IMG/VR virus record: IMGVR_UViG_3300042402_002641
Location: 1-64,000 of that record
DNA: 64,000 nucleotides
Strand: one strand, 5' to 3'
A program made the translations under genes and the position numbers. The notes beneath the pieces were generated by a model that did no database searches, was not told where the DNA came from, and was given only the letters and a program-made list of their open reading frames with translations. Of the stretch, positions 17,531-27,202 are shown one piece after another. Numbering within the stretch: the stretch's first letter is position 1; each line of letters begins with the position of its first letter.

Positions 17531-17923
17531 TTAGTTGGACCACGTCCACCGATTATCTACGTCGTTAAAACACGCAGTAGCTCTCATGGTTTTTTCTACA
17601 TTGTAGGCAATGGCCTGTACGTGCAATCTACGACAGTAGCCTGCACCGCTGGGCCATGTAGCAGATGTCATAGCCATACCGCTGGCATCTTTCTTGTACC
17701 AACGCACTACTTCACCATTGTCTGCGTACATCACTGCATGATGTATGGCCTGATTATAAGCGGTCTTTTGTTCATCATCCAGAGTCTTGAACCAACCAAA
17801 AGTAAGGTCTGCCAATCTATTAGACCAAGCGGCAGAACTGTAGTTAAAGAATCTGGGATTCTCTAGATCATTGGCCAGTACCGAACTACTGGCCGTGAGT
17901 ATCAACAATTTCCCAACTACCAT
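17531..17923 (-). CDS. 17-kDa surface-antigen-like secreted protein
   Basis: Signal peptide; NGEVVRWY..YCRR..ATAC..W motif; start uncertain. Confidence 0.7.
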   Translation of the reverse strand: MVVGKLLILTASSSVLANDLENPRFFNYSSAAWSNRLADLTFGWFKTLDDEQKTAYNQAIHHAVMYADNGEVVRWYKKDASGMAMTSATWPSGAGYCRRLHVQAIAYNVEKTMRATACFNDVDNRWTWSN

Positions 17924-18212
17924 CAGGCAGCTGGCAACTGAGCGCACGGTATTGAACATCGGTTCCACCTTTCTTCATCCATCCATTAAAGTATCCACAG
18001 TTAGAACCTATTCCAACTCTGGCCACTGTGAGTCGCTTGACTTGATCGTCTGAGCATTCCACAGTGGTACGGCTGTTAACTCTCTCACCATTTTCTGTAA
18101 CAATGGTTTGATTGGTATAGCAGTACTGCGGCTTGTTGGCTGAAACCTTTGGTGAAGAACTACAGCCAACCAACGATACCGCAAGGATCGTTAGAGCTAG
18201 AATTTTCATCAC
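17886..18212 (-). CDS. lipoprotein
   Basis: Lipobox LVGC; ends CQLPDGSWEIV. Confidence 0.75.
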   Translation of the reverse strand: MMKILALTILAVSLVGCSSSPKVSANKPQYCYTNQTIVTENGERVNSRTTVECSDDQVKRLTVARVGIGSNCGYFNGWMKKGGTDVQYRALSCQLPDGSWEIVDTHGQ

Positions 18213-18688
18213 TGTGCCTTGGCTTGTTTAGCTTCAGCGATCAACTGATCGAACACAGGCTTTGGCATTTCAAGACGCACAAAGGTATAGTGACGACCTT
18301 GCATGGTAAAATGTGCAGTCTCAGTTTTCAAATGTTCGCGAATAGTAGTGCTCTTGACCACATACGAGATAGAAGTTTTTGTGTTCTTCTTATCATTGAC
18401 AAAATCAATCTTGGTTTCGCTGTTGACTTCTGAATTGATGCGTTTTGCAAAATTATTCATTGCAATAGCATACATCTGTTCTTCTGCGGCCTGTGCATGA
18501 ATGCTTTCGCCCCCACCACAGGCGTAGGCAAACTCTTTCTTCCACCAAAACCAACCCTTAACACCTGCTTGCTGGCATTCTTGATACCAGTCTGGCTGTG
18601 CATAAGTTTTACGATCGTCAATACTCTTCATTGACGAACAACCAGAAATGGCTGCTGCCATCAAACCAACTGCTAGTGCCTTTTTCAT
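18209..18688 (-). CDS. lipoprotein (LPP20-like)
   Basis: Lipobox ISGC; PDWY motif. Confidence 0.7.
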   Translation of the reverse strand: MKKALAVGLMAAAISGCSSMKSIDDRKTYAQPDWYQECQQAGVKGWFWWKKEFAYACGGGESIHAQAAEEQMYAIAMNNFAKRINSEVNSETKIDFVNDKKNTKTSISYVVKSTTIREHLKTETAHFTMQGRHYTFVRLEMPKPVFDQLIAEAKQAKAQ

Positions 18689-18722
18689 AAAAACCTTTCT
18701 GTGTGTGAATTAATACAGTACA

Positions 18723-18751
18723 AGTATAGCACCGTGGCCGATCAAAGTCAA
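18723..18751 (-). promoter_or_regulatory. sigma70 promoter of the lipoprotein operon
   Basis: TTGACT-N17-TATACT. Confidence 0.75.
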
Positions 18752-18768
18752 CCACGGTGTTTACCAAA

Positions 18769-19071
18769 TTACTTGAAGAAGATCAATGCCATTAACACTG
18801 CTTGAATAATGAATCCAAACCCAATTGTGACGATGTTTAACATGTCTTTCTGGATAGTGGCTTTGACAAACAACAAGGTTAATCCTGTCCAAACCAACAG
18901 CACCAAATCTACACCCGGTAATCTGTCTGTTAGTCCTGCCATCACTGCCAGTAGACTGGGTATTGTTGATGCATGCAATACTATTACTGCTAACCATCCA
19001 AATGTTTCTGCCGAAATCACAGAAATTTTAGTTTGGATAAATTCTTTCAGTTGATTGATATTTGTCATCAT
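18769..19071 (-). CDS. small membrane protein (3 TM)
   Basis: Hydrophobic; coupled to the hydrolase by ATGA overlap. Confidence 0.7.
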   Translation of the reverse strand: MMTNINQLKEFIQTKISVISAETFGWLAVIVLHASTIPSLLAVMAGLTDRLPGVDLVLLVWTGLTLLFVKATIQKDMLNIVTIGFGFIIQAVLMALIFFK

Positions 19072-19622
19072 ATTTTAGATTCCTTTGCTCGATAAAAAAC
19101 GTGTTGACCTATTTGTCCAATTTTTGGTAAATTCCATCTTGGGTTAACGTAGGTGGCATGATAATACAAAGCATCTTTGAGAACAGACAATCTAAATCCT
19201 TCCAAAAGAACTTTCTTAGCGACTTCATAGCTTTCATTGTAGGCTTCCTTGTTTATGGGACGATTTTTATGTGTAGAGTCGCAGTACCATGAGAACTGGC
19301 ATACAACTTTTTCCATAACAACATTTTTTTGGTACACAACTCCGCAGACATCCTTACCAAATACGCCGGCTTGTACACGGTTCAGTGTGACCTGAGCCAC
19401 TGCTACCTTACCTTCGAACGGCTCATAACCTGCTTCGCGATAAATGTTAATGGCTAAACAATCTAACTGTTGCTCTCGAGTTTTGATAGATATCACATCT
19501 TGACTATAATATCCATTTTTCTCTTTGAGACCTAAAAATTTAGTAGCGGTTAAAGTTTGAACCAGCACGACTACTAGAATAAATCCTACGATGTAGGATA
19601 TAATACGAATTGACTTTTCCAT
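19068..19622 (-). CDS. cell wall hydrolase (SleB/Hydrolase_2)
   Basis: CLAINIYREA..VAVAQVTLNRV..QFSW..YYHATYVNPRW..IGQHVFY; N-terminal TM; AGGAGG RBS. Confidence 0.92.
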   Translation of the reverse strand: MEKSIRIISYIVGFILVVVLVQTLTATKFLGLKEKNGYYSQDVISIKTREQQLDCLAINIYREAGYEPFEGKVAVAQVTLNRVQAGVFGKDVCGVVYQKNVVMEKVVCQFSWYCDSTHKNRPINKEAYNESYEVAKKVLLEGFRLSVLKDALYYHATYVNPRWNLPKIGQIGQHVFYRAKESKI

Positions 19623-19624
19623 AA

Positions 19625-19870
19625 GTCCTCCTTTCATTTAGTGTGCGATGTTTTGCACAATACATTAAGGGAGTTAACTTCACGAGGCTCTGAAAGAACC
19701 CTACTTTCGTGTAGTTGTCTCCATTGGACGCACAAGCTCATAACATTGTGTGCCTTTGGCGACCCTTGGCATCCCGAAAATACGGGTTTCTCATTGGCCA
19801 AGACCCGCGGAACCGTTTCAGCTTTTGACATACTTTGGTTCTACTATCTCAGTTTCTTTGCGAAACGTTT
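19625..19870 (-). ncRNA. candidate structured cis-regulatory leader RNA
   Basis: Six or more stems plus a possible pseudoknot in ~245 nt without a credible ORF. Confidence 0.5.
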
Positions 19871-19913
19871 AATATATAGTCGATATTTTGGATTCATAGT
19901 CTTATACTGGTGA

Positions 19914-20309
19914 TTATCGACGCATTTTGGAGATATCTTGTGCTTCTTCATCTGAAAACACAGGCACAGCATTGCTCTTGTGCATTGTAGCGATTCCTTT
20001 AACTTTGGTTCCGGTATAAACAGGACTGGGCTTCAACAGGGCGTTACCGCCAGTGTCGACACTTTTAATGTGTGCAGTAGTGTTTCTACCTTCGGGAATG
20101 GTAAGGCTGTAAGATCCCTTAAGGGGAGCCGCAGCCAATCCAGATCTACGTTTTTTATCTTCAGCCTCGACGGCCCAACGCTTCTGTAGTTCTTTCCACG
20201 ATTCGTCCAATTCTCTAGCCTTTCTAGCATGTTCAGCCGAGGCGAATTTCTTCTTGCCTTTACGCTTGCCTGTGGTTGAAAGCCACGGACCTTCTAAGTG
20301 CATACTCAA
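19914..20309 (-). CDS. conserved T4-like phage hypothetical protein
   Basis: YTGTKVKGIATMHKSNAVPVF motif; GGAGG RBS. Confidence 0.75.
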   Translation of the reverse strand: MSMHLEGPWLSTTGKRKGKKKFASAEHARKARELDESWKELQKRWAVEAEDKKRRSGLAAAPLKGSYSLTIPEGRNTTAHIKSVDTGGNALLKPSPVYTGTKVKGIATMHKSNAVPVFSDEEAQDISKMRR

Positions 20310-20342: not shown

Positions 20343-20371
20343 AGTATAACAGAAGGTTTGGAAGTTGTCAA
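20343..20371 (-). promoter_or_regulatory. sigma70 promoter
   Basis: TTGACA-N17-TATACT. Confidence 0.8.
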
Positions 20372-21423: not shown

Positions 21424-21930
21424 TTAACTATTCAATACTTTGGCTACTGAATTCATAACTGCGGCAATGCGGCCAATATCACGTAGGTTCTCTACAGTAT
21501 AACCTTCTTGCTTCAATGTTTCGTAATGTGCTTTAACACAGAAATGACACTTGCCAACAATACTTGCGGCAAGACTAAATGCTTCAAAGTTTGCCTTGGT
21601 AGTTCCACCGTGGCTAGCAATAGCATTCATACGCAGTTGCGCTGGCAAGCCCTTAAGACTAGGATCGTCAGCCATTTCAACGAATGGATACCACACATTG
21701 TTCTGTGCCATAATACTTGCGGCAGTCATTGCTGACTCGGCATGTACTGGAGCATCTGCTAAAATTACTGATAGTATCTTTCCGTTGCCAGTTGCGGCTA
21801 ATGCAGCTACAGCACATCCCAAGGCAACATCAGCATCTAGTGTACTACGTACTAGTACAGCATCAAGATTTAACTTAGTGTCCTTTGCGTAATCTGGTAA
21901 TGCGCCTTTTACTGTGTCAATAAAACTCAT
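21424..21930 (-). CDS. ahpD: alkyl hydroperoxide reductase AhpD
   Basis: LPDYAKDTKLNL, MAQNNVWY, GKCHFCVKAH. Confidence 0.92.
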   Translation of the reverse strand: MSFIDTVKGALPDYAKDTKLNLDAVLVRSTLDADVALGCAVAALAATGNGKILSVILADAPVHAESAMTAASIMAQNNVWYPFVEMADDPSLKGLPAQLRMNAIASHGGTTKANFEAFSLAASIVGKCHFCVKAHYETLKQEGYTVENLRDIGRIAAVMNSVAKVLNS

Positions 21931-22340
21931 CGTGTCTGTTCTCCTAAAATCTTATAACCACGGCCTGTAGGATGAACGCCGTCGGCACTCATATGATTCT
22001 TTGGCCTAGGCAATATTGTATCGCCGTATTCCTTGGCAATGCGAACGATTGCATCGTGTGGAACGGGTTTACGATCTTGTCCAGGGTCAATCCAAAATAC
22101 TCGATCACCTTTAATGGCTTGTCGCATTTTACGAAGTTCCGCCTCTGTCTTGACACCTTTGTGGTCATTGGCGCCAAGACTAATGATTATAGTTCGAGCA
22201 GGTTGAGCAGAGGCTTTGGCCAAGTAGTCCTTGTTCCATTGCCACGAGTTCCAACCACCTTTTGCGTAAGCGACACATTCTGGACGAGCCATGGCGGTAC
22301 CTACTGCTATGCTATCTCCTACTATTAGGCAGTCTAACAT
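21927..22340 (-). CDS. SGNH/GDSL hydrolase
   Basis: GDSI, LGAND, DGVHP; TAATG overlap with ahpC stop. Confidence 0.85.
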   Translation of the reverse strand: MLDCLIVGDSIAVGTAMARPECVAYAKGGWNSWQWNKDYLAKASAQPARTIIISLGANDHKGVKTEAELRKMRQAIKGDRVFWIDPGQDRKPVPHDAIVRIAKEYGDTILPRPKNHMSADGVHPTGRGYKILGEQTR

Positions 22341-22879
22341 TACAATGTCTCGCCGCCGACTGTACGATTGCAAGCACATAGTTCGCCAGTTTGTAGCGCA
22401 TCTAATACACGAAGTGTCTCTTCTGGGCTACGGCCAACGTTCAAGTTGTTAACTGTCACGTGTTGAATAACGTTGTCTGGGTCAACGATGAATGTAGCAC
22501 GAAGGGCTGCACCTGCCGGAGCATAGAATACGCCCAACTGCTCGATCAAACTCATTTCACCACGTTGGGTGTCAGCGAATTGATTGTGTGTGATTTTCTT
22601 TAGATCAGCATGGGCGTTCTGCCAGCTAACTTTGCAGAACTCGTTGTCTGTGCTGCCTGTTAGCAATACTGCATCACGGTCGGCAAAGTCACCTGCTAGT
22701 TTGTCGTAGGCTACAATTTCTGTAGGGCATACGAATGTAAAATCTTTTGGATAGTAGACAATTACTTTCCACTTGCCTTCAAAACTTTGATCTGTAATTG
22801 TATAGAATGCGTCTTCTGGTTGTCCTGGGCGAACACCTGTTACTGCGAATGGGGCTAATTTATCACCAACTGTTTTCAT
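22340..22879 (-). CDS. ahpC: peroxiredoxin AhpC
   Basis: YPKDFTFVCPTE, GRSPEETLR, ELCAC. Confidence 0.95.
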   Translation of the reverse strand: MKTVGDKLAPFAVTGVRPGQPEDAFYTITDQSFEGKWKVIVYYPKDFTFVCPTEIVAYDKLAGDFADRDAVLLTGSTDNEFCKVSWQNAHADLKKITHNQFADTQRGEMSLIEQLGVFYAPAGAALRATFIVDPDNVIQHVTVNNLNVGRSPEETLRVLDALQTGELCACNRTVGGETL

Positions 22880-26538: not shown

Positions 26539-26588
26539 AATATTTCCTTTAAACTTATAATATATAGCTAAAAATTTTAGGTAATCAT

Positions 26589-26617
26589 AAAAAAAGACTA
26601 CCGAAGTAGTCTTTTTT
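26589..26617 (-). terminator. terminator of the cspA-tmRNA transcript
   Basis: aaaaaagactac-cgaa-gtagtctttttt (UUCG loop on minus strand). Confidence 0.85.
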
Positions 26618-26998
26618 GGTTGTTTTGTTTACAAGGTATTTCCTACCCCGGACCTGCTGTTTTTTAGGCAGCTAGAGCAAATCTGCTTTCATTAGCAGCA
26701 CCGCGAACGGTGTTACCAGTGAAGCTCATTGCGCTAAAGTCGAATGTATCTGCGTTTGCATTTACGAGTTTTGCTTGATTTACGGTCATCGCCTACCGTG
26801 TTGCCGTCTCTATTATCTCACCCTGTCGAAACCATGGCAGGCCCATCATAAAAGGACTAGAGCAAATACTACAGTAACAATAATAAAGCCAACTAATGTG
26901 CTATATTCGTTATCCATACTAATCTCCTTATGGTGGACCTGGCGGGAGTCGAACCCGCGTCCAGAATGCCTTCACTTTGAAGGGATTACAACAATTTC
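26618..26998 (-). ncRNA. ssrA: tmRNA, circularly permuted two-piece form: acceptor piece ~26998-26931, coding piece 26844-~26618
   Basis: T-arm GCGGG-TTCGACT-CCCGC and CAGGTCC-A-CCA lie upstream of 5' GGGCCTG..TTCGAC; 7-bp acceptor stem with G3:U70; tag ORF 26759-26664 ends FALAA*. Confidence 0.92.
26846..26917 (-). CDS. 23-aa hydrophobic peptide inside the tmRNA intervening segment
   Basis: TAAGGAG RBS 6 nt upstream; MDNEYSTLVGFIIVTVVFALVLL*. Confidence 0.65.
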   Translation of the reverse strand: MDNEYSTLVGFIIVTVVFALVLL

Positions 26999-27202
26999 TT
27001 AGGCGGGCTGAATATTACTAGCCTGCTGTCCTTTCTGACCCTGAGTTACTTCAAACCTTACACTCTGTCCTTCTTGTAGGCTCTTGAAGCCACTCGAATT
27101 AATCTGTGAAAAGTGAGCAAATAAGTCTGCGCCACCATCGTCCGGAGTAATGAATCCAAAACCTTTGGCGTCGTTAAACCATTTTACTTTTCCTGTTACC
27201 AT
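26999..27202 (-). CDS. cspA: cold shock protein
   Basis: [19 protein letters not shown]. Confidence 0.96.

Follow-up and report, generated by a model that had tools for sequence, protein, structure and literature searches.

A conserved structured leader RNA upstream of the putative lysis genes of uncultured freshwater jumbo phages

A folded RNA of about 250 nt is located just ahead of the lysis genes in an abundant group of uncultured giant lake-water phages, where it matches no described RNA family, is better conserved than the proteins around it, and is a candidate switch for the timing of lysis. The analysed window, a stretch of 64,000 nt, constitutes the first part of a 280-kb IMG/VR virus record (linear, CheckV completeness 79%), i.e. 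an uncultured jumbo phage, and the DNA runs that contain the locus are lake-water metagenomes. On the minus strand, to which all coordinates below refer unless otherwise stated, a gene of unknown function (phrog_27048, E = 1e-32; 19914-20309) is followed by a non-coding gap of 291 nt (19623-19913) and by a gene for a Hydrolase_2 (SleB-type) endolysin (19068-19622; PF07486, 1e-24; phrog_938 'endolysin', 1e-21). The gap contains six hairpins (P1-P6, about 19642-19866) between a conserved TATATATT box and the ribosome-binding site of the hydrolase gene.

An earlier note, based on the sequence alone, had described a large structured leader with a pseudoknot at this position and proposed ligand- or protein-controlled expression of a lytic enzyme, possibly by a c-di-AMP riboswitch. 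The observation itself was confirmed, since all the helices listed were found in the sequence at the expected place and strand, and the fold is more stable than chance (-78.2 kcal/mol against -64.4 +/- 4.1 in shuffles, z = -3.4). Three details required correction. The gap is 291 nt rather than 245 nt, with the true start at the ATG at 19622 and not at 19637. The CUAC/GUAG helix is not conserved, GUAG being replaced by CCAG or UCAG in about half of the homologues, so that CACGA/UCGUG is simply nested and the pseudoknot as described is not there. Finally, the gap is long for this genome (94% coding) but not unique, as about 30 gaps of 180 nt or more exist in the 280 kb.

To investigate whether the structure is conserved, viral contigs were searched with either flanking protein, which gave 160 loci, and in about 55 of these the leader was 81-99% identical at the DNA level. 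A hand-checked P1-P6 structure on 27 distinct sequences gave 94.5% paired cells, with changes on both sides in P2, P4 and P6. A covariance model of P1-P5 then found exactly one copy in the phage's own genome, and many more in loci fetched with a 14-mer of P5. In total the RNA was found in more than 150 distinct viral or metagenomic contexts. On 63 distinct sequences aligned to the model, 97% of cells are paired, and the covariation score is 0.191 against 0.073 +/- 0.003 in shuffles (0 of 500 reached the observed value) and at most 0.031 when partners were slid. Kept G-U pairs fix the folded strand as that of the hydrolase mRNA. Absence of conservation or covariation had been named in advance as an outcome that would speak against a structured leader, and the strong covariation observed here is the opposite of that outcome.

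Conservation of the leader begins at the box CTATATATT (19871-19879), a possible T4-late-type -10 element, in which TATAT is kept in at least 97% of 115 leaders while the sequence 5' of it is variable. Promoter function of the box is inferred, and its enrichment over the genome is only weak. In several relatives a divergent HNH/endonuclease VII-like (homing-endonuclease-type) gene is inserted between the phrog_27048 gene and the leader (related loci L105:3399-3827, L126:3399-3845, L085:3399-3845, L010:2201-2710, L084:3398-3838 and L113:3396-3815), always 5' of the TATAT box and not between box and leader, which marks the box as the 5' boundary of the leader. The site looks like an insertion hot spot next to a very conserved sequence.

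The P1 hairpin GUUUC-GCAAA-GAAAC (19852-19866; stem 19866-19862 with 19856-19852) forms the 5' edge of the RNA and is invariant in 62 of 63 distinct homologues, the exception being one C-G to U-G change. The same C to U change co-occurs in 2 sequences with a G to A change in the distal GAAAC of the P3 internal loop, so an alternative long-range pairing cannot be excluded. RNAalifold indeed proposed two alternative long-range helices (GUUUC with the distal GAAAC, and CUAAGAU with GUCUUGG), but both conflict with P3, which has support, and only this one double change favours the first. The single-stranded linker J1/2, UGAGAUAGUA (19842-19851), is nearly invariant. It has no conserved partner, and a pairing with the coding region seen in the minimum free energy folds was conserved neither in position nor in strength.

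P2 (19810-19841; GAACC/GGUUC, 19841-19837 with 19814-19810) carries a variable 22-nt loop, and 4 of its 5 pairs show changes on both sides, for example GAACC/GGUUC, GAUCC/GGAUC and GACAUG/CAUGUC, with 98% of cells paired. P3 (19759-19808) is a long hairpin formed by GCGGGUCUUGGC and GCCAAGGGUCGC (19808-19797 with 19770-19759), with an asymmetric internal loop (CAAUGAGAAA) and an apical helix P3a (CCCG/CGGG, loop UAUUUU). In P3 99% of cells are paired, one-sided changes (G-U to A-U and G-C to G-U) occur, and the G.G mismatch is repaired to G-C in one subgroup, whereas P3a is invariant. P4 (19727-19754; GGCACACAA/UUGUGCGUC, 19754-19746 with 19735-19727) has the conserved loop GUUAUGAG, and 5 of its 9 pairs change on both sides with four to six pair types each; P2 and P4 each show three to six pair types at four or five positions. 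The UUAUGA of the P4 loop is kept in all but one deletion variant (L106/L233).

P5 (19670-19722) is a long imperfect hairpin (GGAG..AACU.CACGA-bulge-GGUUCU/AGAGCC-UCGUG.AGUU..CUCC, with GGAG at 19722-19719 and CUCC at 19673-19670), and both of its strands are invariant in more than 100 leaders, only the 6-7 nt bulge (three types) and the apical loop being variable. All matches found with the model retain the 5' part of P5, and those lacking its 3' part are cut off by the end of their contig. Part of this evidence derives from searches that required an exact P5 word; the protein-seeded set shows the same invariance without that bias, but it spans less divergence. P6 (19642-19659; UGUGC/GCACA, 19659-19655 with 19646-19642) covaries freely, with more than 20 stem variants and a variable loop or insert between the conserved flanks AUGUAAUGU and ACACCAAGU.

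The translation start region AAAGGAGGACUUAUGGAAAAG (19611-19641; AGGAGG at 19627-19632, ATG at 19620-19622) is highly conserved in about 85% of leaders and lies in an unpaired stretch of about 45 nt between P6 and a conserved 5-bp hairpin inside the hydrolase coding region (19584-19598, nt +25 to +39; NCCUA-loop-UAGGN'). In this latter hairpin the first base of codon 9 (Ser/Thr/Ala/Pro) covaries with the wobble base of Gly codon 13, with 81 of 99 paired against a mean of 45 and a maximum of 61 in 2000 shuffles. It is followed by U-rich codons and was flagged as terminator-like in a scan of the consensus, though its role is unknown.

Three natural variants lack all or part of P3: L117/L216, L273 and L193 lack P2 and P3, all of P3, or the 5' half of P3, but keep P1, P4, P5, P6 and the start region. 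A tertiary contact between the P3a loop and the P5 bulge is a candidate, since the two elements switch together between three combinations: UAUUUU/AAAGUA with 6 of 6 pairs, UGAGAUU/UAUGUCA with 5 of 6, and UGAGAUU/AACCCA with 4 of 6. This contact rests on three sequence types only, and 2 of 3 singleton variants break a pair.

Codon-type conservation of a 65-aa open reading frame (19634-19831) had likewise been named beforehand as a result that would overturn the RNA reading, and none was seen. The homologous ATG is present in only 55 of 115 distinct leaders, and the reading frame from it varies between 13 and 66 codons. An ORF from the AUG in the P4 loop is 5-63 codons long in shifting frames, and a 90-aa ORF on the plus strand is not conserved either; one-nucleotide and 7-nt indels are frequent, the ORFs are broken by indels in homologues, and stop-free stretches on either strand drop to as little as 27-33 codons. 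A DNA-level cause of the conservation, such as homing-endonuclease targets or gene-conversion tracts that spread one sequence among co-infecting phages, could be suggested from the neighboring endonuclease genes and from a quick hydrolase tree on which this leader type needs at least 8 changes of state, hinting at modular exchange, although the tree is short and weak. However, the compensatory changes and kept G-U pairs show selection on a folded minus-strand RNA, and invariant and covarying segments are interleaved, unlike in a conversion tract. Coding and DNA-level explanations are therefore largely refuted, and we consider them very improbable.

The RNA was sought among known families and genomes. 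A covariance-model scan of 19400-20100 against Rfam 15 (4227 models, including Intron_gpI, T-box, self-cleaving ribozymes, put/EAR-type leaders and known phage motifs) at E <= 10 listed only three chance sRNA hits (E = 3-7), and scans at the gathering threshold of the window and of ten related loci gave nothing in the leaders. A 25-base gapped pattern of P5 hit one contig, a 4.3-kb piece of a MAG that is most likely phage, among 185,579 prokaryote species genomes, while the same pattern hit at least 120 metagenome contigs. BLASTN of the leader found nothing in 50,697 GenBank phage records or in E. coli genomes. The hydrolase has only distant relatives (under 60% identity) among cultured phages, and the upstream gene has six records there, with full-length matches at 34-43%.

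The genomic context is nearly constant. Of 138 distinct contexts with enough flank, 137 have the hydrolase start 48-77 nt after P5, and of 119 contexts 118 have the phrog_27048 gene upstream of the RNA. In the one context without this spacing of the hydrolase start (L186), an IS605-type TnpB gene (L186:4459-5715, minus strand; Cas12f1-like TNB, OrfB_IS605 and HTH domains) lies between leader and hydrolase. The leader is better conserved than what it precedes, with 76-92% nucleotide identity to the window where the hydrolase CDS shows 55-78% and the protein 39-78%. The hydrolase has a hydrophobic N-terminus (residues 1-33), read as a membrane anchor, and its stop overlaps the start of a 100-aa three-TM holin-like gene, which is followed by two lipoprotein genes and one TM protein gene (17531-19071). 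We read this as a lysis cassette, although only the endolysin has family support; the holin-like and lipoprotein assignments rest only on hydropathy and lipoboxes, without family matches, the functions are inferred, and the identification as a lysis cassette is not settled.

Relatives whose hydrolase is at most about 61% identical keep the gene order but have other leaders, or none, after a similar AACTAYWTAWT box. Type B (loci L033, L035, L038-L048, L111, L124, L130-L157) is about 130 nt, with covarying hairpins, a conserved CUAGCGA loop and an SD-like AAGGAGA inside a hairpin. Type C (L020, L114, L120, L129, L138, L159) is about 110 nt and has a hairpin loop, GUUAUGA, that resembles that of P4. 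Type D (L123, L127, L144) is a minimal form with box, SD and start only. Types B and C both have covarying hairpins, conserved loops and a hairpin just 5' of the SD, but they lack P1-P3 and the extended P5, and their similarity to the window's leader is marginal (nhmmer E = 0.005 over the 3' part only). None of these types matched Rfam in the loci scanned. As relatives carry other leaders or none at the same place, the leader is an add-on layer to a gene that can work without it.

At least 14 freshwater metatranscriptome runs contain the RNA. Contigs from these data cover 19615-19899, and summed depth over the leader is 5-10 times that over the flanking genes in two data sets (X26 and X15), while in a third (X20) contigs with 0-2 differences cover only 19617-19899 and both flanking genes are absent. 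This fits a stable or attenuated leader RNA, but the excess may be the summed depth of many strains that share the conserved part. Only assembled contigs were examined, the ends of which follow strain branching and adaptors, and some contigs cross the TATAT box, so that neither a 5' nor a 3' end was fixed. A strong sigma-70-type promoter match (TTGACA-17-TATACT with TG, 11 of 12; 20343-20371) lies in front of the phrog_27048 gene, and read-through transcripts from it could enter the leader.

Taken together, we favor, at a probability of about 0.55, that the region is the 5' leader of the lysis-cassette mRNA and a new, phage-specific cis-acting RNA. The contrast between freely covarying helices and about 100 nt of absolute invariance, helical positions included, calls for a sequence-specific partner or for overlapping alternative pairings, and the fixed link to the start region argues for action in cis. 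In this view the invariant P3-P5 core, possibly packed by the loop-bulge contact, would be recognised by a trans factor (a phage or host protein, the translation or transcription machinery, or a small molecule), the occupancy of which would set how much endolysin and translationally coupled holin-like protein is made, and so would time lysis. What the analysis demonstrates is that the RNA exists, is structured on this strand, is conserved beyond its flanking genes, is tied to the hydrolase gene, is non-coding and is present in RNA libraries, whereas the promoter, the cis-regulatory role, the existence of a partner and the direction of control are our inferences. Against this reading stand the architecture, a row of hairpins without a closing helix, the variants lacking P3, and the lack of a detected expression platform.

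With regard to the latter, no intrinsic terminator was found between leader and start. The SD is not part of any conserved helix, and its predicted accessibility varies from 0.14 to 0.99 among homologues. The best anti-SD partner, the P2-3'/P3-5' strand, pairs with the start region at -13.7 kcal/mol, but this was equalled by 27% of shuffled start regions and is lost in about 20 leaders with other spacers; pairing of CUCC (3' strand of P5) with the SD amounts to only 4+2 pairs and was not pursued further. Given also the short terminator-like hairpin inside the CDS, these observations leave the presence of an expression platform undecided.

The interpretation in the earlier note was thus partly supported: a large, conserved, non-coding structured leader directly upstream of the cell-wall hydrolase is confirmed, and ligand- or protein-controlled expression of a lytic enzyme remains a reasonable hypothesis that is not shown, while the pseudoknot and the c-di-AMP link are not supported. 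A small-molecule riboswitch in which P1-P5 act as an aptamer for a metabolite or nucleotide second messenger, and ligand binding changes translation or stability of the lysis mRNA, is a tentative possibility. The generic features of a structured 5' UTR domain with covarying helices, conserved junctions and fixed position are present, a tertiary contact is possible, and over-representation of leader-sized RNA is as seen with attenuated riboswitch leaders; binding of c-di-AMP or any other ligand, and its effect on expression, were not assayed. On the other hand, no riboswitch model matched at E <= 10, the invariance of whole helices (P1, P3a, P5) is more than a ligand pocket needs, and the RNA is tied to one gene in one phage clade and, apart from the MAG contig, was absent from the bacterial genomes searched, unlike known classes. 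Wall hydrolases are among the genes regulated by c-di-AMP riboswitches (ydaO-yuaA, RF00379), which are likewise long multi-helix leaders, but the present RNA is a row of hairpins rather than the pseudo-symmetric fold of that family, and c-di-AMP is practically excluded as a family assignment. In the most far-reaching version, which we regard as speculative, a new class of ligand-sensing (or self-cleaving) RNA found only in uncultured freshwater jumbo phages would read a host metabolite or nucleotide signal and gate translation of a membrane-anchored endolysin, i.e. an RNA-based lysis clock, with at least two other structured leaders having evolved at the same site in related phages.

A passive leader, which senses nothing but protects the late lysis mRNA from 5'-end-dependent decay and keeps the start region open by means of P6 and the coding-region hairpin, is somewhat less likely. 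P1 at the presumed 5' end, the unpaired window between two covarying hairpins, the short or missing leaders of relatives and the apparent accumulation of leader RNA are in line with it. However, protection needs structure and not sequence, and the invariance of about 100 nt over the same distances at which P2, P4 and P6 covary is not explained. An RNA that modifies RNA polymerase, in the manner of HK022 put or Bacillus EAR, so that late transcription reads through the lysis cassette and beyond, is unlikely. The leader does follow a promoter-like box at the head of a long run of same-strand genes, invariance would fit binding to a conserved host machine, and the coding-region hairpin is conserved by covariation, but that hairpin is short (5-7 bp, 2-3 G-C pairs) with a poor U tract, there is no evidence of termination, and no put or EAR model matched. 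An independent RNA gene (a trans-acting sRNA, a protein sponge or a self-cleaving ribozyme) is more unlikely still; contigs covering just the leader, and sequence invariance typical of catalytic or protein-binding RNAs, could suggest it, but the spacing to the start codon is fixed, the SD region is conserved along with it, no terminator was found, and no known ribozyme or sRNA model matched.

How large phages time lysis is known for only a few model phages, and RNA-level control of endolysin synthesis is documented mainly for T4, where a single hairpin in the 5' part of the lysozyme (gene e) mRNA hides the SD in early transcripts while late transcripts start inside it, which restricts when the enzyme is made (McPheeters et al. 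1986). Here the SD is outside all conserved helices, and the structure is about 250 nt and in part sequence-invariant. The lambda pR' leader ('6S RNA', about 194 nt, with qut) also lies between a late promoter and the lysis genes, but it ends at the terminator tR' and works through protein Q, and the cis-acting put RNAs of HK022 consist of two small hairpins; no terminator and no sequence or model similarity were found here. The T4 gene 32 operator, in which a 5' pseudoknot nucleates protein binding over an unstructured start region, shares with the present leader a structured 5' domain followed by an open start region and is a model for protein-mediated translational control in a large phage, but no homologous protein or RNA was identified. 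A RegA-type repressor gene (PF01818) was not found in the genome, though the positive control of that search also found nothing. If the leader senses a factor it would be the first lysis-linked RNA switch class specific to phages and give a handle on infection dynamics in freshwater bacteria, and even as a stability element it is a clean new RNA family with natural deletion variants and sister motifs, which could serve as a marker for this phage clade in DNA and RNA data sets and as a test case for RNA-structure discovery in viromes.

Two further identities were considered. The P4 loop UUAUGAG (19737-19743) is the exact 7-nt complement of the anticodon loop CUCAUAA of tRNA-Met(CAU), including the phage's own tRNA-Met gene, which lies outside the window (G000:C1:69473-69550 in the phage genome) next to a tRNA-Arg(TCT). 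AUGAG also recurs in the P3 internal loop, and UUAUG in J5/6 and at the true start. As there is no UGGN partner for the acceptor end and no T-box model match, we treat this as a possible coincidence. J1/2 and P5 faintly recall the S and R elements of group I introns, but no intron model matched.

The phrog_27048 protein was examined as an RNA-binding candidate. It has a basic N-terminus, and its AlphaFold2 model is poor (pLDDT 62, mostly coil plus helices) and thus uninformative. The family is extremely abundant in metagenomes, with at least 8000 scored candidates (clusters at 90% identity), all with E <= 0.001. Just upstream lies a cluster of redox or auxiliary-type genes (21424-22879), comprising an AhpC/TSA peroxiredoxin (22340-22879), a GDSL-like hydrolase fragment (21927-22379) and a carboxymuconolactone-decarboxylase-family protein (21424-21930). 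The phage further encodes a two-piece (permuted) Betaproteobacteria-type tmRNA (26573-27023), with a tag peptide ending in ...FALAA, and the same gene is present in a relative (L200), hinting at a betaproteobacterial host.
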